NCBI RefSeq assembly: GCF_000143415.4
Contig: NW_003314281.1
Span: 2,197,710-2,261,709, forward strand
DNA: 64,000 nt
From: Selaginella moellendorffii
Lineage: Eukaryota; Plantae; Lycopodiophyta
Reading direction: 5' to 3'
Below are positions 19,471-64,000 of this stretch, piece after piece. The notes below the pieces were generated by a model. It was not told the DNA's origin. It did no database searches and saw nothing but the letters and a program-made list of their open reading frames with translations. The position numbers were made by a program, and so were the translations under genes. Position 1 is the first letter of the stretch; each line of letters starts with the position of its first letter.

Positions 19471-19554
19471 AAGGAATTCGCTCTTATTTTTCTTTAAAAC
19501 TTTTTTTAATGTTTACTCAAGTGTTTTTGTCATTTTTATGTAGACATATAAATC

Positions 19555-39287: not shown

Positions 39288-39344
39288 GATTTATATATCT
39301 GCATGAAATGACAAATAAACTTGAGTAAACATTAAAAAAACCGC

Positions 39345-39812
39345 AAAGCAGTTCCCTTGGCACTAGGAAGATCAGTTCGTCGCTGAACCAATCTTCTCAG
39401 CGCCAAGGGAACAAAAAAAAGAAGAAAAGAAGCAGTTCCCTTGGTGCTGGGAAGATCAGTTTGTCGCCGAACTGATCTTCTCAGTGCAAAGGGAACCAAA
39501 AAAAAAAGAAAAGAAGCAATTCCCTTGCTGCTGGGAAGATTGGTTCGTTGCCAAACCAATCTTCTCAGCACCAAGGGAACAAAAAGAAGAAGAAAAGAAG
39601 AAGTTCCCTTGGTGCTGGGAAGATTGGTTTGTCGCTGAACCAATCTTCTCAGCGCCAGTGGAACGACAAGAGACAAAAAAAAACCCAAAATTTAATGTGC
39701 TAGGAAGATCGGTTTGTCACCGAACCGATCTTCTCAATGCTAATGGAACGATAAGAAAAAAAAAACCCAGAATCTAATGTGCTGGGAAGATTGGTTCGCT
39801 GCCAAACTGATC
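39345..39812. repeat. Tandem array of ~6 doubly palindromic 84-bp units
   Basis: GGAAGAT core at 39366, 39450, 39534, 39618, 39703, 39785; second inverted pair CCAAGGGAAC...GTTCCCTTGG around an A-rich loop. Confidence 0.88.
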
Positions 39813-40890
39813 ATTCTAGCGTGAAATAGCTATGAGGCACAAGTTACTTGCGAGCTAGGAGCAAAAGATAGGGAGATGGAAAAGCAGCAGAGAGAGGCAT
39901 ATCTTGATTGAGGAGTGTCTTTCTAGTGTCTTGAAGTTTTAATGATAGTTTTAATGTTACTATAATCTATTATAATGTCTGATGCATGTTTGCACATAGA
40001 TCCAAAGAAGGATTTTCAACACGTGAAGTTTGATAATTAATAATGATATCAGTAATGACATTTGAGTATAATGTGGCAATCCAAGAGGTCTGAACTAACT
40101 AATAGCACATGTGATGTGTCAAGTTTGTTAAATCTTAAGTGCTAGGTGATGATAAATTTTATCAAATCTTAAGTGCTAAGTAATGATAATTCTTCAATGA
40201 AAGATTCAATTCTTACTATGACTTGAGTTTTATCCATAATTGTGAATACTACTCAATGATATTTAATGCATTTAGGATCTAATACAAAAAAAAATAAATT
40301 TCTGGATGAAAATTCATTCATTCATGTATTAGTATAGTACAATATATTTCAATATGCCTTATTTATAATCTTTAAAGTTCTTGTAATGATTTCAAAATAT
40401 GTACAAAATATTGATGAAAATGCATCCTTTCTAGATAATTTGGAAAAAATAATATCATATCTCTAATAACAGAAATGTTGATAGGTGCTAGTTATATCAT
40501 CATTAAAATATACAAAATAAAGAACCATAATTCACATATAATAATAATTATAAGATAAAATAAGATCAAAGATATTATGATAGCTGAGATTTAGGTTATT
40601 TGGAATGAACAGCCAGGATGAGAAATTGGTTAGGGTTAGGGCAGCCATCAGCCTTGAGGCCCAGGTTTTTTTAAGGCTCCCTCCCAGAGCGTGAGAGAGA
40701 TCCAGAGATAGCGAGAGAGTGTGAGAGATGGAGCATGTGAGATTGCGAGAGATCGGGCACGTAAGAGTGCAAAAGATTGAGCATGCTAGAGTGTGAGAGA
40801 TTGAGAGATTGAGATCTCCAGTGCTGGTATCTTCCAAAACTTGAGAGACAGCCTCGTCCTCCTGGTGCCAAGGCCAAGGGCGCGCCGAGG

Positions 40891-41880
40891 ATGTTCCGGG
40901 TAAGCTTTTGTTCTCTCTTTTCCTTTGAAGTTTGTTTGTTTACTCGTTTCTTCTTTTCAGCTCTCCATCGCGCCCCGCCCTGGCAATCCAGCCATGGAGC
41001 TCTCTTCCATCCTTGAGCAATCTAGCAGCCGCGAATTTCTTGGGGAGCGATGCTGCGAGCTTGCGATCGGCCTCACTGGATGTGATCTCGATGCGTTTGA
41101 GCACCGGGATCATGAAAAGAGGGCCATACATCCAAGGGCCTTGTACTTCATATTCTCAAGAACTTCCGAAGAAAAAGGCTACTTTGGTTTCAATTGAGGA
41201 GACAGTGATGACAGGGGCTTCAAAAGAACCAGCTCAACAATACGCTGACCAGATGCTGCACTACGAGCTGGAAAATGACGTCGGAAAAGATGCTGTAGAA
41301 GTTAGAACCGAGTCTGCTTGTAAGGAATAGTACAGTGGCGATGACAGGAGTACTCCTCAAGTGCTGAATAGTCAAGTGGACGATTGGACCAAAACAACTA
41401 CAATCGTCGGTGAGAAGGAAGTTAACTCTTGAAACATTTAATCCAGGTGACCAGAACATTCGGGAGCCTGTTTCCTAAAGAAGAAAGAAGTCACGAAGGT
41501 TTGCCGCTTTAACATGCTTGCTTTCTTTCTCACTCGCATTACCGGAGGAACTTTTAGACGACTATAAACAAGGTTAAAATTGACTGGAGTGCTCTATGGA
41601 GTACGAAGTCAAGGCAAGTTCTGTTTGTAAGCCAGCATTTCTTCTATTTGGTCTTCTAAATTCTTCTATGCTTGCTGATTGCAGATAGTTGAAATGAAAA
41701 TGATGATGCTAAACATGAAATCTCAGTATCGGCAGCAGATGACAACTACCGGAAAAGGCCATATCAATCAATGTGAAACTTCTACAGCTGCCAATGATGA
41801 AAGAGCTTTCCTTGGTTACAAGCAACCAAGCGAAACAAAACGTTGATTTTCTGAAGAAGCAGGATAAAGAAAACTTGAGT
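40891..41880 (+). pseudogene. Unidentified spliced gene remnant
   Basis: ATG TTC CGG|GTAAGC donor, pyrimidine tract and CAG at 40960; overlapping broken ORFs 40925..41197 and 40932..41330; further GT-AG candidates. No recognisable domain. Confidence 0.35.
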
Positions 41881-41999
41881 AGGGAGCTCTTTTCTATAAT
41901 ATCTTTTTCTTATATTATATTGTTTAAAATAAAATTTTGGATATGTGAATATCGAGAGGGGAAGTTGCAATAAAAAATTGACTCCATCCTTCAATTGAA

Positions 42000-42760
42000 A
42001 TAAACTTGTCCATACAAGTTTATCCACGGAAGTTTGTTTTTAAACTAAGTTGTGAATGAACAAGAGTGCCCCTTTATCTTGAAAATATCTACCATGGGCC
42101 TTGCCTTTAGTATAAATCTTGTCTCCCGAATGGACATGTTTGGGTCCAGTGACCTTGCAAATGCATGGGTACATTTTGACCATATGGAGTACGTATTAGG
42201 TTGGACAACTATGGGAGCTCATGTGTATGATCTAAAGTAATTTTTATTCTCATTATATTGAAATTGTTGTAATATTTGTGTTTTCATATGCTATATTGTA
42301 ACTTGACAATTGTGACAGTAGAGTTTAAAGTACAAGACCAAACAACCCAAGAAATATTTTGGAAGTCCCTTTCGGATATTGTCCTAAAGCAGACTGATAA
42401 GCTTACAAACTTTCGCAGTTTCATGATAGATGGGGCTAGTGTAAATTGGAATGGTGTTCGAGCAATTTTTGGGAATGGTCAATTATTGGAAGGTTATGAG
42501 AGTTCCATTGGGCTCAAATCCTAAACTAACACTGCCACTTTATCTAGCCAAAGTTTCAATTAATGTTTAAGGAGTTGTGTAAACAGTGATAGGTTGCACC
42601 TTCTAAAGAAGAGCATAAGGTAAAAGCAAATAAGATTTGAATGTGATGGCGTAAAAATGGCCATACGGATATAAGTTGTTTATTACAACTTGAGTCATGG
42701 TTAGGGTGGTGGGAAGTTAAGATGTTCCAGTAAGGACATCACTCTTTTTAAGTTGGTTTC
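42000..42760 (+). pseudogene. MULE-like DDE transposase core fragment
   Basis: DLANAWVHFDHMEYVLGWTTMGAHVYD and FRSFMIDGASVNWNGVRAIFG fit the MULE core pattern; the inverted paralog reads HERTCEFY where CxxH is expected. Stops present. Confidence 0.65.
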
Positions 42761-43580
42761 TATTTTTTCTTCTCATTTTATTGCCTTTTAATATTGCCTT
42801 TTCCATTAGTGGAGTACACTCTCTGAGCTTCTATTGGTGATATGAAGATTATTCGCTTAAAGTGTTGTTTTCCTTTTGCTGGTGAAGATGTTGGTAATAA
42901 GAATACTTTTTCTGCAAACATCTTATTTTTTGTTTTAACAAATATCCCTATTATGGCATGTAATAAATATTTAAATTGTTAGAACAAGAAGTGCTCTTTA
43001 GAACATTTTTATCTATATAATATGTATGGAGGTATGAAATTATTAAATTCATAACCTTATTTAAAGTTTTTAATGTTTGTATTAAACTACAATTGAAATT
43101 TGAGCTCAACTTATGAGCTCAACTCTTCAACTTGTGAGTTCAAATATAGTCCACACTCTATAAAATCTATGACATGGATATAAACATGGTTGGAACTTAG
43201 TGTGTTTTATGATTTAGATAAGTTTAAGGTGCAAATGGTGCAAAGCTATTTTGAGTACACTTTTGGAATATTTACAAAGTCTAATAAATGGTCAGCTCTT
43301 GTTTTGGGTTTAATTTTGTGTTTATCATCAACTTTTAGAATGCTATTATGGTGATCCCATCCAGTATTGTGGAGGATTCAAGGACTAAAATGAAATCGAG
43401 GAAGTTATGTCTAAAGCTTAGACATGCTAATGTTTTTATCACTATCATCTCCAACTGAGGTTGCTGATTATCAACTCACTTGGCAAGAATAGCAAAATCA
43501 ACACATTTTAACACTTTGATTTATAAGAACTACTGCCCTTAAAGAATATACTCAGACAGCGGCGGCTAGGGCTTAAGCCC

Positions 43581-46500
43581 ATGGAGGTGGATGCGAGCAC
43601 TGTGGAGGAGTTTGTAGAGTTCATCGAAGACATAGATGGGGCAGAGGGCTGCGAATTTTACCTTGATGATGGTAGAGTGGCGGTACATGATGTTCTCCAG
43701 GAGTTCTCGGCTGTCTTTATCAGTGTGAAGCGCTATGAGCAAGGCAGGGTCAGGTGGAGACGTCTACAGGCAGGGGAAGACGGCCTGAGCAGGTCTACAT
43801 ATGTGCCTGGATCTTCTCATACTATTCGGGCAACGAAGGCTCCTACACGTAAGTAGCGTTGCCTGGATCTGCCGGCCTGGTGTGGTTTTCGCAACTTTGT
43901 GGTCTTTGGATCTGTGTTCTTTCTGGGCTGTGCGTTATTTAGGAGTGCTTCTCGTTTCGCCCTTTTTTTGCCTCGTCGCGCCTCTTGCCCCCTGGCTATG
44001 CCGAGTACTGACAAGTTTATATTTCTGTTTCAGCGACCCTGCCGATAACCCTTCAAGCTGCGCCAGGTAAGCAATTGCTGAGCAAAACCACTTCTTGGCT
44101 GGAACTTGGCGTTTACTTGTCGTGGTGCTAGTGCCTGGTCTCTGTGTGTTTGTGAAGCCCTTCGGCTGTTGCCTTTGTTGGTGCGGTGTGTTTTTTTTGC
44201 TGTGTAGCTTGTAGAACGTGTTGCCTGGATTTTTCTGCATCTGCGGCTCTTCGTACGTACGGGGTTATGCTTTGGTGTTTAATGTGTTGGTGTACTGTGG
44301 CTATTTCTACTACTGACACATTTGTGTTGTTGTAGTGTCGAGGTTGCTGGATGTATACACAAAACAACTGGAGGATGCAAGGTTTCTTCGCGGGATGCCG
44401 GCGAGGAGGGTGCCAGGCTGCAAATTGCCTCTTGTGGACAACGGTGCGCAGCCGTATTTACATGCGGACTTGGGAGATTATTTTACTTTGGTCGGAAGGG
44501 ACGAGACGATTCAGCATCTTATGGCAGCCGCTGCACGGGTCTTTGCAACTTTTATGAACACGACGGCCAGTGCCTCGGATATTGAACGAAAAGAGTTCAT
44601 GTTGATGGTCATCGGATTTCCTGGCGCAGGTAAAACAACTGTCGGGTCATGCCTTTCAGCTCTCCTCAGAGAAGCGTGGTTGAGGGGCACAGAAACAGGG
44701 GCTATAGATGCCATTCTCGAGGACCAGCTTGGTTCTGGTAGGCTTGTCACTCAGTTCAAGGAAATGGTGAATAATGTGTTGGAGACCGGGAAACACCTTC
44801 GAATGTATCATTCCCTTGAGACGACAAGGACTGGGGGTGCACTTCTGCTTGAGAACGGCCTGGAAGGCGCACAGGTTTTGGCCCTTCGGTCCTTGCATGC
44901 AGCACTTTGTCCAATGAATACGACTGCATATGGTGATTTTCTCAAGGAGTTGGATGGCATATTTCCGGGCCTGAGGAATGTGCTGGCTTTCGGAGATGTG
45001 GTCGACTTCATTCGAACTGGTCTTAAGGTTCCTGCCGACAAGCGAATTTTCCTATCTTGGTTTTTTGATGAAGTCAATAAGGCTCGACCTCAGCGAGGTC
45101 GCCCAGCTGCATCGTCCTGGATTCATGAAGCTTTCTCGGCCTACGTTCAACATATCAAAGGTAACCGAGGTGGCTTGACGTTTCCTGTACTTACAGCAGC
45201 AACGACCCGATTTTCTGGGGCCACAATGCGTTACACGTCTACGGAGAATGCTACGAGTATTTTTATCCCTATCAGGCCTTTGAAAGAGGAGGAAGTGGAA
45301 CATATAACGAAAATTTTCTTTTCAAGACTAGGAGATACTCTCGACATGGAGAAACCATTTGAGTTGAAGGACGGACTAAGGAAGCTGATAAAGTTAGCAG
45401 GAGGTAATCCTAGGATGCTTGATCACCTGTTGAGAGGGTTGATGCCCGAGCACCCTCATCTCGAAGCTTTGAAGTTCTACGAGAAGGTTTGTTCGGCTCT
45501 TTTTTGTCTTTTTTCTTGATGTGATGAGAAGTTTTTTTATGTTTGTTACAGGTGGATCAAGATCTCACCCAAGCCGATCTGTGCAAAACAATAACGAATG
45601 CGTGGAAACGTATTAAGGGCAGTTATTATCTTCACTACCTTCATGACAGCAACTATTTGTTAGTGCTACGAGCCCTTTATGTTGCGCTGCTGGGGACCCT
45701 TATCAATCGGGACGACCTAGTATGGCCAGGCATTTACAGTGATAAGTGGGGATTTTTAGAGTCTTGCGGTTTAGTTGGACTCTTACGCAACGAGGTACTT
45801 TTCTGGTATTTCAGAAGTTTATGTGAGTGCTTATGTGGGGTTAATTTACAGGAGGAGCCGCCTCCCCATAAGCAGGTAAAATTATCGAAACAGGAAGACA
45901 CAAAGAATGGAATGCGCGCTTTTTCCATCATGTTCTCTCCACTCCTTATATACCATCTTGTCGAGAACCTACATGTGGCGGAGCTGCGACATTTATGGCC
46001 TCCTATACTGGATTCTAATCCCAAGGTTAAGGAGGTATCAGACCTCATGTGCATTGTCTTCATGATATACATGGGTAAGCTTTTTCATGATCGCGAGAAG
46101 GACACGGTGTTCGAGTTCACACTCAAAGACATTCTCCCCTCAAATTTCCGCGTTCCTGCACGTATGCAAGCTTTGAAGTTCCGGTTGCCAGCTGGTGCAA
46201 GGTTTGGACCTCCGAAACGTCAGCCTCATCAGATTCATGAAGCAGAGGCATTTCAAGCCTTTTTAAATGACAACAAGAAGCAATTCTATTGGGTTGGTAT
46301 TGGCAACCATGGACCTGATAGCTTCATCCATCTAAAGCTAGTGGTTGTGGAGGATACGTTGGATGATTTTTTTATATTTCTTGAGAGTAAGCACAGGGAA
46401 TGTTATGAAGGCCAACAAGCAAGATGGGAACAAGATTTTCTGAAGAAAACATGGAGGATAGAGCAATGGATAGAAGGTATTTAATTTTATTTGTGGGTGG

Positions 46501-47031
46501 TTAAATGTGTGTCTTTTCAGATGGGGAGTACGCTGTCATTTTTATGACAGACCAAGCATTGCATAACGTGATTCGGAAAGTAAAAAAGCAGGATAAGATG
46601 GTTGTTCCGAAGGTGGATACATGCTATTACGGGTATCCGCAGCAGAGTCCATTTGGTACGTTTTTTTATGCTTTTCTTTTTGTTAGAATTGGTTTTTATG
46701 TTTTTATGTTGTATGTGTAGGTTTATTTAGTGCCGTGAGGCACACATCAATGCTAGCAGCTGCAAGTTGGAGTTGGAGAGGAAAACAAACGAGAGAACCT
46801 TTTGATCCAACCTACGAACCTAGTGGTAATCCACGGGGTGCTGAGCGAAGAACACCACCAAGAACACGCTCTAAAACCCGAGGACAGGTTGGAAGAACAC
46901 GCTCTAAAACCCCAGGACAGGTTGGAAGAACACGCTCTAAAACCCGAGGACAGGTTGGAAGAACACGCTCTAAAACCCAAGGACAGGTTGGAAGAACACG
47001 CTCTAAAGGTGCCACGAAGCGAAAAAGGTAA
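43581..47031 (+). CDS. Crinkler/RHS(CR)-type NTPase + PD-(D/E)xK nuclease protein, 921 aa, 7 exons: 43581-43848, 44034-44066, 44336-45486, 45552-45794, 45852-46476, 46521-46655, 46721-47031
   Basis: All six introns are GT-AG and phase-compatible (2766 nt, no internal stop). Motifs: LVGRDE, Walker A GFPGAGKT (44614-44637), Walker B WFFDE, GGNPR, GPDSF...FLESK, then IFMTD and YYG. Confidence 0.85.
46861..47007 (+). repeat. 33-bp coding tandem repeat (~4.5 copies, RTRSKTxGQVG)
   Basis: AGAACACGCTCTAAA recurs at 46861, 46894, 46927, 46960, 46993. Confidence 0.95.
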
Positions 47032-47149
47032 CCAGGAGGTTTGACAAGCACCATCAATGGTTTGCACAAAGTATTAATGTGTGCAATTGTCCTGTATAGA
47101 AAGAGATATGTATCTTAACCTTAATGGGCGTGAATATCTTTTACCAATA

Positions 47150-50100
47150 CTCACTATATCATTTTTAAGTGTTGTGCTGAATGTGTGGTGAGTGCTCACA
47201 CACCACAAAAAAGTTTTTGTGGTGCATGAGCATTCGAGCCCATGCTCTTTTGGAATATTGTAGTTGATACTATATTCACATGCATTGTGATGAGAGATGG
47301 GTCTGAAATTAGACAATACATGGGGTATGATAGTGAGTGTAAATCCCAGCTCCCTCATGCCCACATCAACAGTATAATCAAAGCATTTTGCCACTTTATG
47401 AAAGAGAATTTTCTGTTAGCTACACACATCAGAATTTTTGTAGCCATTGCCAATGCTTAGTGGTAGCAGGGCCTTGGTTTAATGTATTTTTAATAGCTCT
47501 TAGAACAACATGTATAACTTATAGCAGAGAGAAATCAGTCTACTCCAATTTCAATATTGGATCATTTGTGCTACCTAGGGAGGGGGAATAGTCAAACTCA
47601 CCTTGATTCCACCACATACGAGGTGAGCTCCTCCAATAATGTAGAAGCACGAAGTCAGTGAGAGTATTAGAGTTTTAGACAAAGATCTAAAGACCCAATG
47701 AGCTCTTTAATCTGATGCAAATGCAAATCTCACCCACAAGTCTCTTCACACTAGAATTTTAAGAAATCCTGTTCATTGGAAACTTTTTCCAACCAAGAAA
47801 AGGTGGCACCTTGTTCTTAACCCGCAAAATACATTTGGGTTTGTAGCTGTCTTCCACCTGCTTCAATCTAACAACGTCTCTACCAACACTGAGGCCAGGA
47901 GGTGATGTGCTATGCCAATTCCATTGCATTGCACTACAACCAAGTGAGAATCTCGCTAGCTGTGAGAGAAACAAACAATGATTACTTCACAAAATTCCTT
48001 GGGGATGTCCTATTGCTAGTAGCCAACCATGAAGTAAAACAAAGCCTTCCAAAACACTCTAAAGCTTATTAAAACTGAATGCAATTTTACTGGCACTCAT
48101 AATCTTCTCATTAATCACTAATATCATTTTTAAAACACTTTTGAAGACTTTTAAATGCTTCAGAAAAGGGGTGAAGCCCAACCCAACCCTTCCTTATTAT
48201 TGCCCTCCTTTTTATAGTTGGCTCTCCCAATGATTTCTTCTAGTTCTCTATTGATTGTAGACTTCAAGGAATATCCATGCATCTCCACATCACATCCTAA
48301 ATGTAATGTCGATCAAAACATGATTTCCATTGTTTCCAGGGTTTGGACAGCATAGCTATGCCACATGCCACCACCTAGGATGCAATCCTACTTCTTTAGG
48401 TTTTGCCCAAGCTCATACTTCTCAGCTAATGCTCCCACATTCATTGTTAACAAGTGAATCTTATCCTTGTTTGATCTCTAGGGCCAATCCCAACTGTCCT
48501 TAACAACATCTAAACTTTTGAGGTAGACCCAATAGCACCTTCTTAAAGCTTCTCCACCATCTCTCCCTTAGCTAAAATAGAAAATTCCTATATCTACTGC
48601 TTTGTGGGAATCTCTAAACCTATCCTAGATTCCTTTTGTTTCAGCATCCCTTTGCCACTTGCTCAATAGGTGATTCCATTCTACACTTGCTCCTTGGTTG
48701 TCTTCTCAAGCTCAAGCAATGCCTCTGCATCCTCTGAGATGTCCTCATCCTTGTCTTTTAGCTTGCTAATGGTGTCCTCTGAGTCATCACCTAGGTCCAG
48801 CTCCTCCCTAGTGAACTCCTCAAATTTCTACTTAGACTCCTCTTCTCCTATCGCTTCCTTCCATAAGATCTTAATTTCCTAGTTCAAAGTCTTTTCTTGC
48901 AACTTTTTCCTTGAGGATCTAGTTGACACGATTGCCTCAATCAGCTTCCCTATTGTCCAAAGCTGCCACACCATAAGCTCCTATAATATAGAGCTCTCCT
49001 CCACAATTTAATTGTTTTTTTGAATCTTTATTAGTGTGTTTTCATATTGGGTGTTGAACTCCATAATTTGTTATTCAAATTCTAACTTTTGTTGTCCCTG
49101 TGCCTTTACTAAATGTTGTATGATATAGTAAGCAATTTCAACCTGTTGTGATGCACTCTTTTTATCAGCCATTTTAGGTGGCTTTATCTGAGGGCAGTGT
49201 ATTAGAGTAGAATGATACTCAACATCAGGCATATGAGAGCTTTTTACTCTAATGTCTATGCCAACATCTTCACTAACAAAGGAAAAACAATGCTTTGAGT
49301 GGACTATCTTCATATCATTAATAGAAGCTCGAGAAGTGTACTCCATAGATATGCCGTGGAGCACTTCCTCAATTGCAGTTACCATTATTTAGGCGGGTGG
49401 AGTCAATTTTCTCTTCATCCTATCATGTAACATCTCAATAGAAAGCCTTGTTCCCATGTAACCACTTGAGGACCTCGCATACACCCCAATTGTGAATCTC
49501 TCCAAAAGTAAGCACTAGAGTTGGCATTTCTCTGAAGCAGGGAAAGGGAAGATGAGTCTATATGAAGTCTATTAAATTTAATATGCACTATAAAGCAATC
49601 TTCAAAAGTGTTCCAATTTGAGGAGATATTAAAAAGCAATAAAATGACAAGAAAAATAGAAACCAACTTAAAAAGAGTGATGTCCCCATTGGAACATCCT
49701 AACTTTTACCACCTTAACTATGACTCAAGTTGAGGTAAGCAACTTGTGTCTGCATAGCCACCTTCACGCCATCATATTTAAATTTTATTTACCTTTGCCT
49801 TGTGCTTTTCTTTAAAGGATGCAGGTTGCCATTATTTGCACAACTCCTTAAACACTGATTGAAACTTTGGCTTGATAAGATGGTAGTGTTAGTTTAGGCT
49901 CTGAACCTAATAGAACTCACAAGTCCTCTCATGACCTTCCAATGGTTAACTAGTTCTAAAAATTGCTTGGACACCATTCTAGTTTGCACTAGCCCTATCT
50001 ACCATGAAATAACAAAATTTTATAGGCTTCCAGTCCGCTTTAGCATAATATCAAAAAGGGACTTCCAAAATATTTCCTGGGTTGTTTGGTTTTTTACTTT

Positions 50101-51830
50101 AAACTTTATTGTTGCAATTGTCAAGTTACAATATAGCCTATGAAAAAACAAATATTACAACCATTTCAATATAATGAGAATAAAAATTACCTTGGATACA
50201 TGTGAGCTCCCATAGTTGTCCAACCTAATACACGCTCCATATGGTCAAAATGTACCCCTACATTGTAGAGATTCACACATCCAATTTTTTATCCTAAACA
50301 ATATAATGTAAAAAAAATATATTTTTGTAATGTACAAATATACCTTCTTAGACTAGTAGCAAGTTGTACTCCTCATAGTAAATTCTGTAGGCTAACCTTA
50401 TTTAGTTGAGTCTTTGGTAGCCTAGATTAAGTAGGGTGTTTGCAATAAAACCCTTAAAGACGATCTTTTAAACATGCTTTAGAGTTGCAGATAAGTTTCT
50501 CATAGTTTCTTTCTGCACAACATCTTTGAAACAGTTGAAAGAACTTTTTTGTATCCTTTCTTGTATTGGATGCATATATATGTCAACATATACTACAACT
50601 CTTCTAGCCATTCCATCCCATGGAAGAATGTTAGGACCCTATCCCTTACATCTTAAGCCAACTAGCTAAAAGGGTGATCACTTGATTGTAGGGCCCTTTC
50701 TTTATCCTATTATTCTGATCTATCCTCCCCTTGTCAAAGAATGATCATCTACAATCATATTTAGGCCATCCTCTAGTCACCATGGTCCTTCTTTTAGGGT
50801 TTACCAAACCTTGGTTCTCCCTCTAGATCCACTATGTTAAATATTCCTTTTGAATATTCTTGCCCTACTCATCAGCCACAAGAATAGAACTGGGCTCCCA
50901 TACCAATGTTAGGATCCTATCCCTTACATCCTAAGCCAATTTGCTAAAGGGGGGATCACTTGATTGCAGGGCCCTTTCTTTATCTTATTCTCTTTACCTT
51001 GTACCTAACAAAAAAAGTACATCCTAGCCTTGCTGATAGCACAACATAGAGGAGCATATTTGCAAAATTGACATTTGAATCTAACAGTAATGGTATCACA
51101 GGTAGGATGATTGATTGTAAACCCTTGAAAAATATAGAACTTTTTCCGCGATCTTGATTGCATACTTCATCCATGCAATCTAAATGCTCACCACAATAAA
51201 CTACAGACACCATACCTTCAAAATGTTGGAAGTGTGTGGTATTAATCTTGCATCAATTATGGACATTTTGCTTGGTTTCCATTCCCTTCTGTTTAAAACT
51301 TATGTTGTTAACAAGAAGTGGTAGCTCAAAAAAAATATTGCCGTTGTAAGAGGATGGAAGTTTGCTCATGAATCTATACAAAAACAAGCACTTGTCAACT
51401 GAGACATGCGAAAACTGGAAAGCATTGTTAATGGCTTTGAATATTGTTGAAGATGGAGCTAGTGAATTTGACATTGATACTAGCATGGCTTCTCCACTTA
51501 AACTAAAAGAAGAGGAGAGGATGACGACTGACTCTTGCTTTACATTCACTTTTGCTAGAGTGCATCTTGGCACTTTGATTTGAGATCCAAAAACTCGAAT
51601 CTCTTTCGATTTAGAATTTTACAAATTTTATTACTGTTTACCCTCACCCACACCGGAAAGAAGAAACCTTGAGCATGCAACTATACCGGTGTCATTGTGA
51701 ATCACAACCTCTAACAAAATAGAGCCAAGACGAAAATCAAAACGCCAACATAAAAAACTTTTGAAAACAATACTTTGAGAAAATAAAAGAGGTGGGTGAT
51801 CTCGAAAATGTAAAAAAAACCTCTCCATCC
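47150..51830 (-). pseudogene. MULE-like transposase pseudogene (Cys/His N-terminal region, DDE core ~49700-50260, possible SWIM remnant ~47185-47260)
   Basis: 49640-50258 is an inverted paralog of 42166-42790. LECSC...CEH near the 3' end; VVYCGEH near the 5' end. Many stops and a TRIM insertion. Confidence 0.6.
50629..51010 (-). mobile_element. TRIM (terminal-repeat retrotransposon in miniature), 382 bp
   Basis: ~100-bp direct repeats at 50629-~50720 and 50907-51010 (TGTTAGG...CCTAACA). PBS-like TGGTATGGGAGCCC (50892-50905) and PPT AAGGGGAGGA on the minus strand. Flanks AAGAA/AAAAA. Confidence 0.8.
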
Positions 51831-52931
51831 TTCATAATAGTTTTTGGAGTTCTCTCTCTCTTTATACTATTTGTAAAAATCTATAGTGAAATATAAATTG
51901 AAATTCAAGGAGAGCAATATGAAGAATGTTAATAGCATACAAAATGAATTTAAATTCTATAACAAATTTAATATATGCAAGTGTGATAGTTTTAATGTTA
52001 CTATAATCTATTATAATGTCTGATGCATGTTTGCACATAGATCCAAAGAAGGATTTTCAACACGTGAAGTTTGATAATTAATAATGATATCAGTAATGAC
52101 ATTTGAGTATAATGTGGCAATCCAAGAGGTCTGAACTAACTAATAGCACATGTGATGTGTCAAGTTTGTTAAATCTTAAGTGCTAGGTGATGATAAATTT
52201 TATCAAATCTTAAGTGCTAAGTAATGATAATTCTTCAATGATAGATTCAATTCTTACTATGACTTGAGTTTTATCCATAATTGTGAATACTACTCAATGA
52301 TATTTAATGCATTTAGGATCTAATACAAAAAAAAATAAATTTCTGGATGAAAATTCATTCATTCATGTATTAATATAGTACAATATATTTCAATATGCCT
52401 TATTTATAATCTTTAAAGTTCTTGTAATGATTTCAAAATATGTACAAAATATTGATGAAAATGCGTCCTTTCTAGATAATTTGGAAAAAATAATATCATA
52501 TCTCTAATAACAGAAATGTTGATAGGTGCTAGTTATATCATCATTAAAATATACAAAATAAAGAACCATAATTCACATATAATAATAATTATAAGATAAA
52601 ATAAGATCAAAGATATTATGATAGCTGAGATTTAGGTTATTTGGAATGAACAGCCAGGATGAGAAATTGGTTAGGGTTAGGGCAGCCATCAGCCTTGAGG
52701 CCCAGGTTTTTTTAAGGCTCCCTCCCAGAGCGTGAGAGAGATCCAGAGATAGCGAGAGAGTGTGAGAGATGGAGCATGTGAGATTGCGAGAGATCGGGCA
52801 CTTAAGAGTGCAAAAGATTGAGCATGCTAGAGTGTGAGAGATTGAGAGATTGAGATCTCCAGTGCTGGTATCTTCCAAAACTTGAGAGACAGCCTCGTCC
52901 TCCTGGTGCCAAGGCCAAGGGCGCGCCGAGG

Positions 52932-53935
52932 ATGTTCCGGGTAAGCTTTTGTTCTCTCTTTTCCTTTGAAGTTTGTTTGTTTACTCGTTTCTTCTTTTCA
53001 GCTCTCCATCGCGCCCCGCCCTGGCAATCCAGCCATGGAGCTCTCTTCCATCCTTGAGCAATCTAGCAGCCGCGAATTTCTTGGGGAGCGATGCTGCGAG
53101 CTTGCGATCGGCCTCACTGGATGTGATCTCGATGCGTTTGAGCACCGGGATCATGAAAAGAGGGCCATACATCCAAGGGCCTTGTACTTCATATTCTCAA
53201 GAACTTCCGAAGAAAAAGGCTACTTTGGTTTCAATTGAGGAGACAGTGATGACAGGGGCTTCAAAAGAACCAGCTCAACAATACGCTGACCAGATGCTGC
53301 ACTACGAGCTGGAAAATGACGTTGGAAAAGATGCTGTAGAAGTTAGAACCAAGTCTGCTTGTAAGGAATAGTACAGTGGCGATGACAGGAGTACTCCTCA
53401 AGTGCTGAATAGTCAAGTGGACGATTGGACCAAAACAACTACAATCGTCGGTGAGAAGGAAGTTAACTCTTGAAACATTTAATCCAGGTGACCAGAACAT
53501 TCGGGAGCCTGTTTCCTAAAGAAGAAAGAAGTCACGAAGGTTTGCCGCTTTAACATGCTTGCTTTCTTTCTCACTCGCATTACCGGAGGAACTTTTAGAC
53601 GACTATAAACAAGGTTAAAATTGACTGGAGTGCTCTATGGAGTACGAAGTCAAGGCAAGTTCTGTTTGTAAGCCAGCATTTCTTCTATTTGGTCTTCTAA
53701 ATTCTTCTATGCTTGCTGATTGCAGATAGTTGAAATGAAAATGATGATGCTAAACATGAAATCTCAGTATCGGCAGCAGATGACAACTACCGGAAAAGGC
53801 CATATCAATCAATGTGAAACTTCTACAGCTGCCAATGATGAAAGAGCTTTCCTTGGTTACAAGCAACCAAGCGAAACAAAACGTTGATTTTCTGAAGAAG
53901 CAAATGCAAAAGCTAGGATAAAGAAAACTTGAGTA
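52932..53935 (+). pseudogene. Unidentified spliced gene remnant, duplicate
   Basis: Copy of 40891-41880. Confidence 0.35.
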
Positions 53936-54053
53936 GGGAGCTCTTTTCTATAATATCTTTTTCTTATATTATATTGTTTAAAATAAAATTTTGGATATGT
54001 GAATATCGAGAGGGGAAGTTGCAATAAAAAATTGACTCCATCCTTCAATTGAA

Positions 54054-54814
54054 ATAAACTTGTCCATACAAGTTTATCCACGGAAGTTTGTTTTTAAACT
54101 AAGTTGTGAATGAACAAGAGTGCCCCTTTATCTTGAAAATATCTACCATGGGCCTTGCCTTTAGTATAAATCTTGTCTCCCGAATGGACATGTTTGGGTC
54201 CAGTGACCTTGCAAATGCATGGGTACATTTTGACCATATGGAGTACGTATTAGGTTGGACAACTATGGGAGCTCATGTGTATGATCTAAAGTAATTTTTA
54301 TTCTCATTATATTGAAATTGTTGTAATATTTGTGTTTTCATATGCTATATTGTAACTTGACAATTGTGACAGTAGAGTTTAAAGTACAAGACCAAACAAC
54401 CCAAGAAATATTTTGGAAGTCCCTTTCGGATATTGTCCTAAAGCAAACCGATAAGCTTACAAACTTTCGCAGTTTCATGATAGATGGGGCTAATGTAAAT
54501 TGGAATGGTGTTCGAGCAATTTTTGGGAATGGTCAATTATTGGAAGATTATGAGAGTTCCATTGGGCTCAAATCCTAAACTAACACTGCCACTTTATCTA
54601 GCCAAAGTTTCAATTAATGTTTAAGGAGTTGTGTAAACAGTGATAGGTTGCACTTTCTAAAGAAGAGCATAAGGTAAAAGCAAATAAGATTTGAATGTGA
54701 TGGCGTAAAAATGGCCATACGGATATAAGTTGTTTATTACAACTTGAGTCATGGTTAGGGTGGTGGGAAGTTAAGATGTTCCAGTAAGGACATCACTCTT
54801 TTTAAGTTGGTTTC
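54054..54814 (+). pseudogene. MULE-like transposase core fragment, duplicate
   Basis: Copy of 42000-42760. Confidence 0.65.
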
Positions 54815-55634
54815 TATTTTTTCTTCTCATTTTATTGCCTTTTAATATTGCCTTTTCCATTAGTGGAGTACACTCTCTGAGCTTCTATTGGTGATATGAA
54901 GATTATTCGCTTAAAGTGTTGTTTTCCTTTTGCTGGTGAAGATGTTGGTAATAAGAATACTTTTTCTGCAAACATCTTATTTTTTGTTTTAACAAATATC
55001 CCTATTATGGCATGTAATAAATATTTAAATTGTTAGAACAAGAAGTGCTCTTTAGAACATTTTTATCTATATAATATGTATGGAGGTATGAAATTATTAA
55101 ATTCATAACCTTATTTAAAGTTTTTAATGTTTGTATTAAACTACAATTGAAATTTGAGCTCAACTTATGAGCTCAACTCTTCAACTTGTGAGTTCAAATA
55201 TAGTCCACACTCTATAAAATCTATAACATGGATATAAACATGGTTGGAACTTAGTGTGTTTTATGATATAGATAAGTTTAAGGTGCAAATGGTGCAAAGC
55301 TATTTTGAGTACACTTTTGGAATATTTACAAAGTCTAATAAATGGTCAGCTCTTGTTTTGGGTTTAATTTTGTGTTTATCATCAACTTTTAGAATGCTAT
55401 TATGGTGATCCCATCCAGTATTGTGGAGGATTCAAGGACTAAAATGAAATCGAGGAAGTTATGTCTAAAGCTTAGACATGCTAATGTTTTTATCACTATC
55501 ATCTCCAACTGAGGTTGCTGATTATCAACTCACTTGGCAAGAATAGCAAAATCAACACATTTTAACACTTTGATTTATAAGAACTACTGCCCTTAAAGAA
55601 TATACTCAGACAGCGGCGGCTAGGGCTTAAGCCC

Positions 55635-58600
55635 ATGGAGGTGGATGCGAGCACTGTGGAGGAGTTTGTAGAGTTCATCGAAGACATAGATGGGGCAGAG
55701 GGCTGCGAATTTTACCTTGATGATGGTAGAGTGGCGGTACATGATGTTCTCCAGGAGTTCTCGGCTGTCTTTATCAGTGTGAAGCGCTATGAGCAAGGCA
55801 GGGTCAGGTGGAGACGTCTACAGGCAGGGGAAGACGGCCTGAGCAGGTCTACATATGTGCCTGGATCTTCTCATACTATTCGGGCAACGAAGGCTCCTAC
55901 ACGTAAGTAGCGTTGCCTGGATCTGCCGGCCTGGTGTGGTTTTCGCAACTTTGTGGTCTTTGGATCTGTGTTCTTTCTGGGCTGTGCGTTATTTAGGAGT
56001 GCTTCTCGTTTCGCCCTTTTTTTGCCTCGTCGCGCCTCTTGCCCCCTGGCTATGCCGAGTACTGACAAGTTTATATTTCTGTTTCAGCGACCCTGCCGAT
56101 AACCCTTCAAGCTGCGCCAGGTAAGCAATTGCTGAGCAAAACCACTTCTTGGCTGGAACTTGGCGTTTACTTGTCGTGGTGCTAGTGCCTGGTCTCTGTG
56201 TGTTTGTGAAGCCCTTCGGCTGTTGCCTTTGTTGGTGCGGTGTGTTTTTTTTGCTGTGCAGCTTGTAGAACGTGTTGCCTGGATTTTTCTGCATCTGCGG
56301 CTCTTCGTACGTACGGGGTTATGCTTTGGTGTTTAATGTGTTGGTGTACTGTGGCTATTTCTACTACTGACACATTTGTGTTGTTGTAGTGTCGAGGTTG
56401 CTGGATGTATACACAAAACAACTGGAGGATGCAAGGTTTCTTCGCGGGATGCCGGCGAGGAGGGTGCCAGGCTGCAAATTGCCTCTTGTGGACAACGGTG
56501 CGCAGCCGTATTTACATGCGGACTTGGGAGATTATTTTACTTTGGTCGGAAGGGACGAGACGATTCAGCATCTTATGGCAGCCGCTGCACGGGTCTTTGC
56601 AACTTTTATGAACACGACGGCCAGTGCCTCGGATATTGAACGAAAAGAGTTCATGTTGATGGTCATCGGATTTCCTGGCGCAGGTAAAACAACTGTCGGG
56701 TCATGCCTTTCAGCTCTCCTCAGAGAAGCGTGGTTGAGGGGCACAGAAACAGGGGCTATAGATGCCATTCTCGAGGACCAGCTTGGTTCTGGTAGGCTTG
56801 TCACTCAGTTCAAGGAAATGGTGAATAATGTGTTGGAGACCGGGAAACACCTTCGAATGTATCATTCCCTTGAGACGACAAGGACTGGGGGTGCACTTCT
56901 GCTTGAGAACGGCCTGGAAGGCGCACAGGTTTTGGCCCTTCGGTCCTTGCATGCAGCACTTTGTCCAATGAATACGACTGCATATGGTGATTTTCTCAAG
57001 GAGTTGGATGGCATATTTCCGGGCCTGAGGAATGTGCTGGCTTTCGGAGATGTGGTCGACTTCATTCGAACTGGTCTTAAGGTTCCTGCCGACAAGCGAA
57101 TTTTCCTATCTTGGTTTTTTGATGAAGTCAATAAGGCTCGACCTCAGCGAGGTCGCCCAGCTGCATCGTCCTGGATTCATGAAGCTTTCTCGGCCTACGT
57201 TCAACATATCAAAGGTAACCGAGGTGGCTTGACGTTTCCTGTACTTACAGCAGCAACGACCCGATTTTCTGGGGCCACAATGCGTTACACGTCTACGGAG
57301 AATGCTACGAGTATTTTTATCCCTATCAGGCCTTTGAAAGAGGAGGAAGTGGAACATATAACGAAAATTTTCTTTTCAAGACTAGGAGATACTCTCGACA
57401 TGGAGAAACCATTTGAGTTGAAGGACGGACTAAGGAAGCTGATAAAGTTAGCAGGAGGTAATCCTAGGATGCTTGATCACCTGTTGAGAGGGTTGATGCC
57501 CGAGCACCCTCATCTCGAAGCTTTGAAGTTCTACGAGAAGGTTTGTTCGGCTCTTTTTTGTCTTTTTTCTTGATGTGATGAGAAGTTTTTTTATGTTTGT
57601 TACAGGTGGATCAAGATCTCACCCAAGCCGATCTGTGCAAAACAATAACGAATGCGTGGAAACGTATTAAGGGCAGTTATTATCTTCACTACCTTCATGA
57701 CAGCAACTATTTGTTAGTGCTACGAGCCCTTTATGTTGCGCTGCTGGGGACCCTTATCAATCGGGACGACCTAGTATGGCCAGGCATTTACAGTGATAAG
57801 TGGGGATTTTTAGAGTCTTGCGGTTTAGTTGGACTCTTACGCAACGAGGTACTTTTCTGGTATTTCAGAAGTTTATGTGAGTGCTTATGTGGGGTTAATT
57901 TACAGGAGGAGCCGCCTCCCCATAAGCAGGTAAAATTATCGAAACAGGAAGACACAAAGAATGGAATGCGCGCTTTTTCCATCATGTTCTCTCCACTCCT
58001 TATATACCATCTTGTCGAGAACCTACATGTGGCGGAGCTGCGACATTTATGGCCTCCTATACTGGATTCTAATCCCAAGGTTAAGGAGGTATCAGACCTC
58101 ATGTGCATTGTCTTCATGATATACATGGGTAAGCTTTTTCATGATCGCGAGAAGGACACGGTGTTCGAGTTCACACTCAAAGACATTCTCCCCTCAAATT
58201 TCCGCGTTCCTGCACGTATGCAAGCTTTGAAGTTCCGGTTGCCAGCTGGTGCAAGGTTTGGACCTCCGAAACGTCAGCCTCATCAGATTCATGAAGCAGA
58301 GGCATTTCAAGCCTTTTTAAATGACAACAAGAAGCAATTCTATTGGGTTGGTATTGGCAACCATGGACCTGATAGCTTCATCCATCTAAAGCTAGTGGTT
58401 GTGGAGGATACGTTGGATGATTTTTTTATATTTCTTGAGAGTAAGCACAGGGAATGTTATGAAGGCCAACAAGCAAGATGGGAACAAGATTTTCTGAAGA
58501 AAACATGGAGGATAGAGCAATGGATAGAAGGTATTTAATTTTATTTGTGGGTGGTTAAATGTGTGTCTTTTCAGATGGGGAGTACGCTGTCATTTTTATG

Positions 58601-59085
58601 ACAGACCAAGCATTGCATAACGTGATTCGGAAAGTAAAAAAGCAGGATAAGATGGTTGTTCCGAAGGTGGATACATGCTATTACGGGTATCCGCAGCAGA
58701 GTCCATTTGGTACGTTTTTTTATGCTTTTCTTTTTGTTAGAATTGGTTTTTATGTTTTTATGTTGTATGTGTAGGTTTATTTAGTGCCGTGAGGCACACA
58801 TCAATGCTAGCAGCTGCAAGTTGGAGTTGGAGAGGAAAACAAACGAGAGAACCTTTTGATCCAACCTACGAACCTAGTGGTAATCCACGGGGTGCTGAGC
58901 GAAGAACACCACCAAGAACACGCTCTAAAACCCGAGGACAGGTTGGAAGAACACGCTCTAAAACCCCAGGACAGGTTGGAAGAACACGCTCTAAAACCCG
59001 AGGACAGGTTGGAAGAACACGCTCTAAAACCCAAGGACAGGTTGGAAGAACACGCTCTAAAGGTGCCACGAAGCGAAAAAGGTAA
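55635..59085 (+). CDS. CR-type NTPase + PD-(D/E)xK nuclease protein, copy 2; exons 55635-55902, 56088-56120, 56390-57540, 57606-57848, 57906-58530, 58575-58709, 58775-59085
   Basis: Exon translations are identical to copy 1 at offset +12054; splice sites conserved. Confidence 0.85.
58915..59061 (+). repeat. 33-bp coding tandem repeat, copy 2
   Basis: Same as 46861-47007. Confidence 0.95.
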
Positions 59086-59203
59086 CCAGGAGGTTTGACA
59101 AGCACCATCAATGGTTTGCACAAAGTATTAATGTGTGCAATTGTCCTGTATAGAAAGAGATATGTATCTTAACCTTAATGGGCGTGAATATCTTTTACCA
59201 ATA

Positions 59204-62200
59204 CTCACTATATCATTTTTAAGTGTTGTGCTGAATGTGTGGTGAGTGCTCACACACCACAAAAAAGTTTTTGTGGTGCATGAGCATTCGAGCCCATGCT
59301 CTTTTGGAATATTGTAGTTGATACTATATTCACATGCATTGTGATGAGAGATGGGTCTGAAATTAGACAATACATGGGGTATGATAGTGAGTGTAAATCC
59401 CAGCTCCCTCATGCCCACATCAACAGTATAATCAAAGCATTTTGCCACTTTATGAAAGAGAATTTTCTGTTAGCTACACACATCAGAATTTTTGTAGCCA
59501 TTGCCAATGCTTAGTGGTAGCAGGGCCTTGGTTTAATGTATTTTTAATAGCTCTTAGAACAACATGTATAACTTATAGCAGAGAGAAATCAGTCTACTCC
59601 AATTTCAATATTGGATCATTTGTGCTACCTAGGGAGGGGGAATAGTCAAACTCACCTTGATTCCACCACATACGAGGTGAGCTCCTCCAATAATGTAGAA
59701 GCACGAAGTCAGTGAGAGTATTAGAGTTTTAGACAAAGATCTAAAGACCCAATGAGCTCTTTAATCTGATGCAAATGCAAATCTCACCCACAAGTCTCTT
59801 CACACTAGAATTTTAAGAAATCCTGTTCATTGGAAACTTTTTCCAACCAAGAAAAGGTGGCACCTTGTTCTTAACCCGCAAAATACATTTGGGTTTGTAG
59901 CTGTCTTCCACCTGCTTCAATCTAATGTCTCTACCAACACTGAGGCCAGGAGGTGATGTGCTATGCCAATTCCATTGCATTGCACTACAACCAAGTGAGA
60001 ATCTCGCTAGCTGTGAGAGAAACAAACAATGATTACTTCACAAAATTCCTTGGGGATGTCCTATTGCTAGTAGCCAACCATGAAGTAAAACAAAGCCTTC
60101 CAAAACACTCTAAAGCTTATTAAAACTGAATGCAATTTTACTGGCACTCATAATCTTCTCATTAATCACTAATATCATTTTTAAAACACTTTTGAAGACT
60201 TTTAAATGCTTCAGAAAAGGGGTGAAGCCCAACCCAACCCTTCTTTATTATTGCCCTCCTTTTTATAGTTGGCTCTCCCAATGATTTCTTCTAGTTCTCT
60301 ATTGAGTGTAGACTTCAAGGAATATCCATGCATCTCCACATCACATCCTAAATGTAATGTCGATCAAAACATGATTTCCATTGTTTCCAGGGTTTGGATG
60401 GCATAGCTATGCCACATGCCACCACCTAGGATGCAATCCTACTTCTTTAGGTTTTGCCCAAGCTCATACTTCTTAGCTAATGCTCCCACATTCATTGTTA
60501 ACAAGTGAATCTTATCCTTGTTTGATCTCTAGGGCCAATCCCAACTGTCCTTAACAACATCTAAACTTTTGAGGTAGACCCAATAGCACCTTCTTAAAGC
60601 TTCTCCACCATCTCTCCCTTAGCTAAAATAGAAAATTCTTATATCTACTGCTTTGTGGGAATCTCTAAACCTATCCTAGATTCCTTTTGTTTCAACATCC
60701 CTTTGCCACTTGCTCAATAGGTGATTCCATCCTACACTTGCTCCTTGGTTGTCTTCTCAAGCTCAAGCAATGCCTCTGCATCCTCTGAGATGTCCTCATC
60801 CTTGTCTTTTAGCTTGCTAATGGTGTCCTCTGAGTCATCACCTAGGTCCAGCTCCTCCCTAGTGAACTCCTCAAATTTCTACTTAGACTCCTCTTCTCCT
60901 ATCGCTTCCTTCCATAAGATCTTAATTTCCTAGTGCAAAGTCTTTTGTTGCAACTTTTTCCTTGAGGATCTAGTTGACACGATTGCCTCAATCAGCTTCC
61001 CTATTGTCCAAAGCTGCCACACCATAAGCTCCTATAATATAGAGCTCTCCTCCACAATTTAATGTTTTTTTGGAATCTTTATTAGTGTGTTTTCATATTG
61101 GGTGTTGAACTCCATAATTTGTTATTCAAATTCTAACTTTTGTTGTCCCTGTGCCTTTACTAAATGTTGTATGATATAGTAAGCAATTTCAACCTGTTGT
61201 GATGCACTCTTTTTATCAGCCATTTTAGATGGCTTTATCTGAGGGCAGTGTATTAGAGTAGAATGATACTCAACATCAGGCATATGAGAGCTTTTTACTC
61301 TAATGTCTATGCCAACATCTTCACTAACAAAGGAAAAACGATGCTTTGAGTGGACTATCTTCATATCACTAATAGAAGCTCGAGAAGTGTACTCCATAGA
61401 TATGCTGTGGAGCACTTCCTCAATTGCAGTTACCATTATTTAGGCGGGTGGAGTCAATTTTCTCTTCATCCTATCATGTAATATCTCAATAGAAAGCCTT
61501 GTTCCCATGTAACCACTTGAGGACCTCGTATACACCCCAACTGTGAATCTCTCCGAAAGTAAGCACTAGAGTTGGCATTTCTCTGAAGCAGGGAAAGGGA
61601 AGATGAGTCTATATGAAGTCTATTAAATTTAATATGCACTATAAAGCAATCTTCAAAAGTGTTCCAATTTGAGGAGATATTAAAAAGTAATAAAATGACA
61701 AGAAAAATAGAAACCAACTTAAAAAGAGTGATGTCCCCATTGGAACATCCTAACTTTTACCACCTTAACTATGACTCAAGTTGAGGTAAGCAACTTGTGT
61801 CTGCATAGCCACCTTCACGCCATCATATTTAAATTTTATTTACCTTTGCCTTGTGCTTTTCTTTAAAGGATGCAGGTTGCCATTATTTGCACAACTCCTT
61901 AAACACTGATTGAAACTTTGGCTTGATAAGATGGTAGTGTTAGTTTAGGCTCTGAACCTAATAGAACTCACAAGTCCTTTCATGACCTTCCAATGGTTAA
62001 CTAGTTCTAAAAATTGCTTGGACACCATTCTAGTTTGCACTAGCCCTATCTACCATGAAATAACAAAATTTTATAGGCTTCCAGTCCGCTTTAGCATAAT
62101 ATCAAAAAGGGACTTCCAAAATATTTCCTGGGTTGTTTGGTTTTTTACTTTAAACTTTATTGTTGCAATTGTCAAGTTACAATATAGCCTATGAAAAAAC

Positions 62201-63881
62201 AAATATTACAACCATTTCAATATACTGAGAATAAAAATTACCTTGGATACATGTGAGCTCCCATAGTTGTCCAACCTAATACACGCTCCATATGGTCAAA
62301 ATGTACCCCTACATTGTAGAGATTCACACATCCAATTTTTTATCCTAAACAATATAATGTAGAAAATATATATTTTTGTAATGTACAAATATACCTCCTC
62401 AAACTAGTAGCAAGTTGTACTCCTCGTAGTAAATTCTATAGGCTAACCTTATTTAGTTAAGTCTTTGGTAGCCTAGATTAAGTAGGGTGTTTGCAATAAA
62501 ACCCTTAAAGACGATCTTTTAAACATGCTTTAGAGTTGCAGATAAGTTTCTCATAGTTTCTTTCTGCACAACATCTTTGAAATAGTTGAAAGAACTTTTT
62601 TGTATCCTTTCTTGTATTGGATGCATATATATGTCAACATATACTACAACTCTTCTAGCCATTCCATCCCATGGAAGAATGTTAGGACCCTATCCCTTAC
62701 ATCTTAAGCCAACTAGCTAAAAGGGTGATCACTTGATTGTAGGGCCCTTTCTTTATCCTATTATTCTGATCTATCCTCCCCTTGTCAAAGAATGATCATC
62801 TACAATCATATTTAGGCCATCCTCTAGTCACCATGGTCCTTCTTTTAGGGTTTACCAAACCTTGGTTCTCCCTCTAGATCCACTATGTTAAATATTCCTT
62901 TTGAATATTCTTGCCCTACTCATCAGCCACAAGAATAGAACTGGGCTCCCATACCAATGTTAGGATCCTATCCCTTACATCCTAAGCCAATTTGCTAAAG
63001 GGGGGATCACTTGATTGCAGGGCCCTTTCTTTATCTTATTCTCTTTACCTTGTACCTAACAAAAAAAGTACATCCTAGCCTTGCTGATAGCACAACATAG
63101 AGGAGCATATTTGCAAAATTGACATTTGAATCTAACAGTAATGGTATCACAGGTAGGATGATTGATTGTAAACCCTTGAAAAATATAGAACTTTTTCTGC
63201 GATCTTGATTGCATACTTCATCCATGCAATCTAAATGCTCACCACAATAAACTATAGATACCATACCTTCAAAATGTTGAAAATGTGTGGTTTTAATCTT
63301 GCATCAATTATGGACATTCTGCTTGGTTTCCATCCCCTTCTGTTTAAAACTTATGTTGTTAACAAGAAGTGGTAGCTCAAAAAAAATATTGCCGTTGTAG
63401 GAGGATGGAAGTTTGCTCATGAATCTATACAAAAACAAGCACTTGTCAACTGAGACATGCGAAAACTGGAAAGCATTGTTAATGGCTTTGAATATTGTTG
63501 AAGATGGAGCTAGTGAATTTGACATTGATACTAGCATGGCTTCTCCACTTAAACTAAAAGAAGAGGAGAGGATGACGACTGACTCTTGCTTTACATTCAC
63601 TTTTGCTAGAGTGCATCTTGGCACTTTGATTTGAGATCCAAAAACTCGAATCTCTTTCGATTTAGAATTTTACAAATTTTATTACTGTTTACCCTCACCC
63701 ACACCGGAAAGAAGAAACCTTGAGCATGCAACTATACCGGTGTCATTGTGAATCACAACCTCTAACAAAATAGAGCCAAGACGAAAATCAAAACGCCAAC
63801 ATAAAAAACTTTTGAAAACAATACTTTGAGAAAATAAAAGAGGTGGGTGATCTCGAAAATGTAAAAAAAACCTCTCCATCC
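59204..63881 (-). pseudogene. MULE-like transposase pseudogene, duplicate
   Basis: Copy of 47150-51830. Confidence 0.6.
62680..63061 (-). mobile_element. TRIM, duplicate
   Basis: Copy of 50629-51010 at the equivalent site, so the insertion predates the duplication. Confidence 0.8.
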
Positions 63882-64000
63882 TTCATAATAGTTTTTGGAG
63901 TTCTCTCTCTCTTTATACTATTTGTAAAAATCTATAGTGAAATATAAATTGAAATTCAAGGAGAGCAATATGAAGAATGTTAATAGCATACAAAATGAAT

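Follow-up and report, generated by a model that had tools for sequence, protein, structure and literature searches.

A probable recent tandem duplication of a Crinkler/RHS-type gene within Mutator-like transposon debris in Selaginella moellendorffii

Pack-MULEs are Mutator-like elements (MULEs) that hold captured host gene fragments between long terminal inverted repeats (TIRs) and are bordered by 9-11-bp target-site duplications (TSDs). Eukaryotic MULEs have WRKY or GCM1 fingers, and the IS256-family transposase ISCth4 is represented by the structures 6XG8, 6XGW and 6XGX. Proteins that join an NTPase to restriction endonuclease (REase) C-termini are described as Crinkler/RHS-type (CR) proteins, and land plants are included among the organisms that have them (Zhang et al. 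2016 as summarised in PMC5289972). A teleost Crinkler-like gene, AACRNL, is reported to have been duplicated along with the hAT/mariner elements that flank it (PMC12957317). Here we describe a 64,000-nt stretch of the lycophyte Selaginella moellendorffii (contig NW_003314281.1, positions 2,197,710 to 2,261,709; hereafter the window), which ends in two neighbouring ~12-kb units, each with a CR-type ATPase-nuclease-like gene between remnants of Mutator-like transposases. We favour, with a probability of roughly 65%, a recent recombination-based tandem duplication of this gene within Mutator-like debris.

Self-comparison of the window revealed that 39943-51949 and 51984-64000 are adjacent direct copies with 99.4% identity over 12,020 aligned columns, in agreement with the head-to-tail units that an earlier model-made reading of the letters alone (the sequence-only reading) had proposed. 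When aligned base by base, the units differ by 57 substitutions (45 transitions and 12 transversions), by a 13-nt indel at 41860/53902, where unit 2 has extra bases at 53902, and by a second indel of 3 nt at 47870, and the repeat period drifts from 12,041 to 12,054 to 12,051 bp along the unit. All four N runs in the window lie left of 29751 and none falls inside 39943-64000, a continuous 24 kb. The locus thus shows the near-identical neighbouring copies, common orientation and unbroken sequence of a tandem segmental duplication. Like the duplications in repeat-rich plant DNA that arise through unequal crossing-over or replication slippage and build NLR and other conflict-gene clusters, it has near-identical head-to-tail copies in which the gene was copied together with its flanks, is edged by transposon debris and includes an identical block that recalls gene conversion; unlike in them, a non-homologous breakpoint cuts off the leftmost copy.

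The stretch that spans the unit junction, 51448-52691, is colinear with 16300-17512 at 82% identity, with no indel at 51983/51984. Since the junction follows this independent paralog base for base, we conclude that it is natural DNA and that an arbitrary false join is excluded; the sequence-only reading had likewise called the boundary native, citing the continuity of 16320-17515. The left edge at 39943 is an abrupt breakpoint, and the DNA to its left is unrelated to 51884-51983.

Differences between the units are unevenly spread. None was found across 44206-47869 (3,664 bp, introns and 3' flank included), where 17.4 would be expected at the unit-wide rate (P = 3e-8) and 12 at the left-flank rate (P = 6e-6), and the adjacent 47870-51349 holds 45 differences (1.3%), the excess being mostly transitions. 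Because the introns are identical too, purifying selection cannot explain this block. Gene conversion between the copies most likely kept the 3.66-kb gene block identical, and other possible explanations are that methylated transposon DNA decays faster or that the identity is an effect of the assembly consensus. The inverted transposase remnants within each unit have diverged by 18% and the units by 0.5%, which makes the transposon debris much older than the duplication. Under the reading that we favour, the flanking transposase pieces would be debris of older nested insertions rather than working ends, and the 12-kb block, in a genome region rich in transposons, would owe its copying to unequal crossing-over or to a replication-based mechanism rather than to transposition, giving at least two copies with a period of ~12.05 kb. 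After the duplication, the gene-bearing 3.66 kb would have been held identical, and the transposon-derived part would have gathered mostly transition differences.

The CR-type gene has a coding length of 2,823 nt including the stop codon (47029-47031 in copy 1), and its introns of 185, 269, 65, 44 and 65 nt are GT-AG in every case. With six spliced exons that are identical in both units (Table 1), the intact nuclease-NTPase gene that the sequence-only reading had placed in each unit stands. Exon 3 contains a Walker A motif, GFPGAGKTT, and a Walker B-like motif, FLSWFFDE, both of which are kept in the paralog LOC9657624 (P0002); these motifs identify the protein as a P-loop NTPase, and the Pfam matches to AAA_16, AAA_18 and KAP are all sub-threshold. 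Exon 4 reads GPDSF..(19)..LESK, a PD-(D/E)xK-like motif that found no support in family, PDB or homolog searches. The word search with exon 4, which covers only proteins 0.55 to 1.75 times the query length, gave zero matches, a blank that the length filter makes weakly informative; a single-sequence AlphaFold model of the exon reached a pLDDT of 36 and was unusable; and comparison of exons 3 and 4 with PADLOC and PDB sequences gave nothing significant. Pfam found nothing in exon 1 at E<=0.1, and hence no recognisable ubiquitin-like CR header, and the N-terminal "header" that it encodes is conserved in LOC9657624. The tail of the protein is basic, with repeats that resemble a nuclear localisation signal and a C-terminal KRKR.

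Two annotated S. moellendorffii proteins match exon 3, namely LOC112347201 (P0001) with 83% identity (E 2e-108) and LOC9657624 with 41% identity over 95% of the exon (E 2.5e-76). The N-terminus of LOC9657624 aligns with CR exons 1 and 2, and the LOC112347201 model has an identical join between exons 3 and 4. Our gene model is therefore supported by annotated paralogs that match exons 1 and 2 and the exon 3/4 splice. Exons were searched singly rather than as the joined protein, so full-length annotated relatives (~940 aa) could have been overlooked. Among PDB sequences, exon 3 (44338-45486) comes closest to TnsC, the ATPase of Tn7-type transposition (7ufi; E 0.056). The match is not significant, but its direction agrees with the proposal that CR NTPase-nuclease modules arose from transposons.

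As read from its sequence, the predicted product combines a header, a P-loop NTPase, a PD-(D/E)xK-like region and a basic tail, which is the CR architecture, and it may act as a nuclease. It resembles described CR proteins in the succession of header, P-loop NTPase, PD-(D/E)xK-like motif and nuclear-localisation-like tail. Unlike them, it lacks a Pfam Crinkler header and any significant similarity to a named CRN domain, and it is the plant's own, spliced gene.

Table 1. Features of the tandem units and related sequences in the window (positions of the window)
Feature	Position	Strand	Details
Tandem unit 1	39943-51983		12,041 bp; abrupt left edge; from self-comparison
Tandem unit 2	51984-64000		window end cuts the unit ~24-37 bp short of a full period
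CR-type gene, copy 1	43581-47031	+	six exons, 940 codons
CR-type gene, copy 1, exons	43581-43848, 44034-44066, 44336-45486, 45552-46476, 46521-46655, 46721-47031	+
CR-type gene, copy 2	55635-59085	+	exon DNA same as copy 1 in all six; offset +12,054
33-nt tandem repeat	46860-47007	+	4.5 copies, 97% matches; in last CR exon; encodes RTRSKTxGQVG repeats
Dead transposase core fragment	41977-42894	+	residues 437-~700 of the 761-aa relative P0027; unit 2: 54031-54948
Pseudogenised near-full-length Mutator-like element	47327-51490	-	from tblastn and boundary comparison; unit 2: ~59381-63541
Third, older partial copy of the - strand element	34705-36805	-	91-96% identical to 47330-49737
Intergenic ("head-to-head") region, first part	51448-51983	+	colinear with 16300-16832; runs unbroken into unit 2
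Intergenic region, second part	39943-40830	+	80-82% identical to 16833-17512; unit 2: 51984-52871

Several observations weigh against a recent tandem duplication of a CR-type gene. Had a simple duplication occurred, the left edge should be native and the middle junction novel, and the reverse is seen. With an abrupt breakpoint at the left edge and a native junction in the middle, a single simple duplication is insufficient and a further event is needed: a longer array may have lost its left part, or two copies of the intergenic region may have crossed over very close to the edge of that region. The window stops short of the right end of the array. As for the gene itself, the REase fold and the membership of the CR family, as read from the sequence, are without statistical support here. 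Finally, the public S. moellendorffii assembly (212.5 Mb in 759 scaffolds at ~7x) has both haplotypes present (PMC3680112), so that allelic variation could account for the 0.5% by which the units differ, and an assembly consensus effect for the 3.66 kb without differences.

This last point leads to the strongest alternative, that the locus is single-copy (or consists of one block between two intergenic regions) and that the two haplotypes of a heterozygous plant were threaded in tandem through the repeated intergenic stretch. The depth and mixed haplotypes of the v1 assembly would allow this, the divergence between the units is low and patchy, and the breakpoint at the start of the leftmost unit is unexplained. 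Against it, 39943-64000 contains no N, the middle junction repeats the continuity of the independent paralog, which excludes an arbitrary false join, and haplotypes usually lie on separate scaffolds in this assembly. A repeat-guided haplotype switch would have to be joined by a second anomaly at 39943, and we consider the artefact unlikely because it requires these two coincidences and no gap.

The transposase remnants that flank the gene were located by tblastn with full-length relatives of the family described below. On the + strand, residues 437-677 of the relative P0027 match 41977-42736 (E 6e-28), in line with the core that the sequence-only reading had placed at 42000-42760; this fragment of ~0.9 kb has several stops and frameshifts and lacks both the N-terminal part and an element end. 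On the - strand, residues ~3-700 match from 51483 down to 49625 in several frames with in-frame stops. The two inverted copies share 82% DNA identity (42160-42794 versus 50264-49626, with a further match of 42810-42894 to 49345-49261), as would suit the diverged, paralogous - strand transposase of that reading. In both copies, stops and frameshifts hit the most conserved motifs, VHFDH..GWTTMGAHVYD, FMIDGASVNWNGVRAIFG and ERTCEFHW.QS. The coding remnants of the - element end at ~49625 and are followed by a non-coding tail of ~2.3 kb up to a boundary at ~47327-47335. The gap of ~120 bp that had been proposed between the 3' end of this transposase and the CR stop codon was not recovered, since the homology boundary is ~300 bp from the stop and the coding part ends at ~49625. 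The older partial copy at 34705-36805 has the same element boundary with no adjoining CR gene, and it abuts an inverted ParB-like gene region (36797-39596 versus 22118-19238). Since the boundary recurs there without a CR gene, the CR gene lies outside the - element. An 85-nt direct repeat (50627-50711 and 50905-50989, 90.6% identity) inside the dead - transposase sits where residues 326-491 of the relatives find no counterpart.

When 16 stop-free segments of the unit were searched against Pfam at thresholds up to E=10, only weak P-loop matches emerged and the transposase pieces stayed blank. A HMMER search with the 83-aa piece 42273-42521 found 24 proteins at E<=1e-3 (best 8e-8), and full-length matches (P0008, P0027 and others of 570-760 aa) fall in a family of >200 unnamed proteins that carry no Pfam domain. 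In the family alignment, two Asp, a Glu and a C-x2-H are invariant, with the C-x2-H after the second Asp. Neither Pfam MULE (PF10551) nor Transposase_mut (PF00872) was recognised at threshold: 10 relatives were blank, and PF00872 gave a single sub-threshold match (E 0.034) among 35 family members. A model of P0027 built on 35 sequences, with a pLDDT of 70-94 in the catalytic region, has the IS256-family ISCth4 transposase as its top five PDB matches (E 1.3e-4 to 8e-3), with Hermes (hAT) behind at 1e-2. Foldseek also matched the model to the GCM DNA-binding domain 1odh_A (E 0.025, probability 0.97), and the Cys/His columns of this putative GCM-like finger are conserved in the family alignment. 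Searching PDB sequences with the family profile gave no match, and the nearest language-model neighbours were MULE/ZSWIM1-3 clusters (0.88-0.91), which we treat only as a lead. The relatives P0008 and P0027 have an N-terminal beta-grasp domain (PB1/DIX/TDP-43-NTD-like fold matches), a putative GCM-like zinc finger and an ISCth4/IS256-like core.

The IS256/Mutator-type DDE RNase H-like core is thus found in the relatives rather than read from the dead copies themselves. With ISCth4 as the top PDB matches of a relative, the MULE assignment that had been made from the letters holds in the sense of an IS256/MULE-fold family, and judging from this model it seems reasonable to call the remnants Mutator-like or MULE-like, though the Pfam MULE test fails. 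The family resembles IS256/Mutator transposases in having an RNase H-like core nearest to that of ISCth4, a conserved CxxH that follows the second Asp, and a putative GCM-like finger; it differs from them in the absence of a PF10551 match, in having one sub-threshold PF00872 match among 35 members, and in the extra N-terminal beta-grasp domain of the relatives. Taken together, the P0008/P0027 family looks like a Mutator-like clade missed by Pfam MULE.

Each unit starts with the left half of an element (dead transposase and intergenic region) that is truncated near 40830, followed by 1.15 kb of other DNA; continues with the isolated core fragment, 0.7 kb of upstream DNA, the CR gene and 0.3 kb of 3' flank; and ends at the boundary of the next - element at 47327-47335. 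The second part of the intergenic region has an additional weak match to 17717-17839, and the first part overlaps the first codons of the - strand transposase. No further homology to the rest of the window was detected for 40830-41976 by tblastx (40600-42000) or for the 42895-43580 region by blastn (42894-43600). Directly next to the N-terminus of the - copy is the stretch matched by 16300-17512, and at 16300-22118 a palindrome array and a ParB-like gene come after. That part of an element consists of an intergenic stretch, an array of ~96-nt palindromic units (17864-18631) and then a ParB/Srx-like gene on the + strand, with a DGNHR motif in the open reading frame (ORF) 20199-20489 and its ParB part inverted at 36797-39596. 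Just left of the breakpoint at 39943 lies an 84-nt tandem array (39346-39796, ~4-5 copies, 77-84% matches), which may be the counterpart of the palindrome array in the inverted element.

Transposon-driven amplification, in which a Mutator-like element carried or bracketed the CR gene (as a Pack-MULE-like or composite element, by alternative transposition, or with the gene in the ParB cargo slot), is very unlikely in our view. It draws on the inverted remnants of one Mutator-like family on both sides of the gene and on the order across the junction, where a - strand transposase, a head-to-head intergenic region and the CR gene on the + strand, ~4.1 kb from the transposase start, resemble the transposase/intergenic/ParB layout at 16300-22118. 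The teleost Crinkler-like gene that was duplicated along with flanking hAT/mariner elements (PMC12957317) gives even this reading a published precedent. The two cases are alike in that a Crinkler-like gene of a free-living eukaryote is duplicated and embedded among DNA transposons; whereas AACRNL has an ADP-ribosyltransferase domain and TIR-flanked, dispersed copies, the locus here appears from its sequence to encode an NTPase-nuclease pair, and its copies are tandem with no TIRs found. Both transposase copies, moreover, are dead and mutually 18% diverged, the + copy is internal and endless, the ParB-bearing copy ends in sequence unrelated to the CR 3' flank, and the copies are adjacent and head-to-tail, not dispersed.

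Element ends were also sought directly. The sole inverted repeat in the unit (42160-42894 versus 50264-49261) is internal, pseudogenised coding DNA and not a pair of element termini. For the only candidate terminus, 47337-47356, the window offers no inverted counterpart; the sequence occurs in one orientation only, and blastn-short comparisons between the candidate element ends at 47327, 34700, 22118 and 36797 gave no TIR. No TSD can be read, since no element ends are definable and the unit junction is continuous element sequence. At another locus, S. moellendorffii scaffold GL377585.1 (L001), a 0.9-kb CR paralog fragment that is 88% identical lies at the scaffold end, and no match to the transposase family was found within 11.7 kb of it. 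The sequence-only reading had suggested looking for MULE flanks at other CR paralogs, and none was found in the 11.7 kb covered at this one locus. Taken together, these tests offer slender evidence against a MULE-bound cassette. The composite or Pack-MULE-like cassette of that reading is not supported, given the internal coding repeat, the endless + fragment and the lack of a TIR in the window, and the recombination-amplified cassette that it had offered as an alternative fits the data.

The locus shares with Pack-MULEs a host-type gene with inverted Mutator-like sequence on both sides. It differs from them in that the flanks are internal transposase coding fragments with no TIRs, the gene is whole rather than a fragment, no TSD is apparent, and the arrangement of the copies is tandem instead of dispersed. 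A Pack-MULE or composite transposon is therefore not supported, for want of TIRs in the window and given the dead, 18%-diverged remnants. Marginally less probable again is a cargo-slot arrangement, in which the CR gene would sit head-to-head with the transposase in the ParB-type position of a Mutator-like element, and element and toxin-like gene would amplify as a selfish unit; if true, it would be the plant counterpart of teleost AACRNL and of the proposed "transposons to toxins" link for CR NTPase-nuclease modules.

Elsewhere in the window, overlapping ORFs at 13427-14483 resemble a retrotransposon gag and lie upstream of the truncated element at 16300. A 3.1-kb inverted duplication (87-3213 versus 5778-8907, 98.6-99% identity) ends at the N gap 8918-9031, and 24861-28351 is a 91.6% direct copy of this repeat beside three more N gaps; these copies could reflect a nested repeat or an assembly problem. 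The transposon families of the window match GL377585.1 at 87-95% identity.

The locus reveals no new kind of mobile element. A possibly more useful side result is the large family of eukaryotic Mutator-like transposases outside Pfam detection; because Pfam is blind to this family, such remnants are easily missed in annotation. If the tandem duplication is real, the locus would be a very young duplicate of a conflict-type (ATPase and nuclease) plant gene, and it would illustrate one route by which such a gene family may grow in S. moellendorffii, namely recombination on a local scale within transposon debris and subsequent gene conversion.

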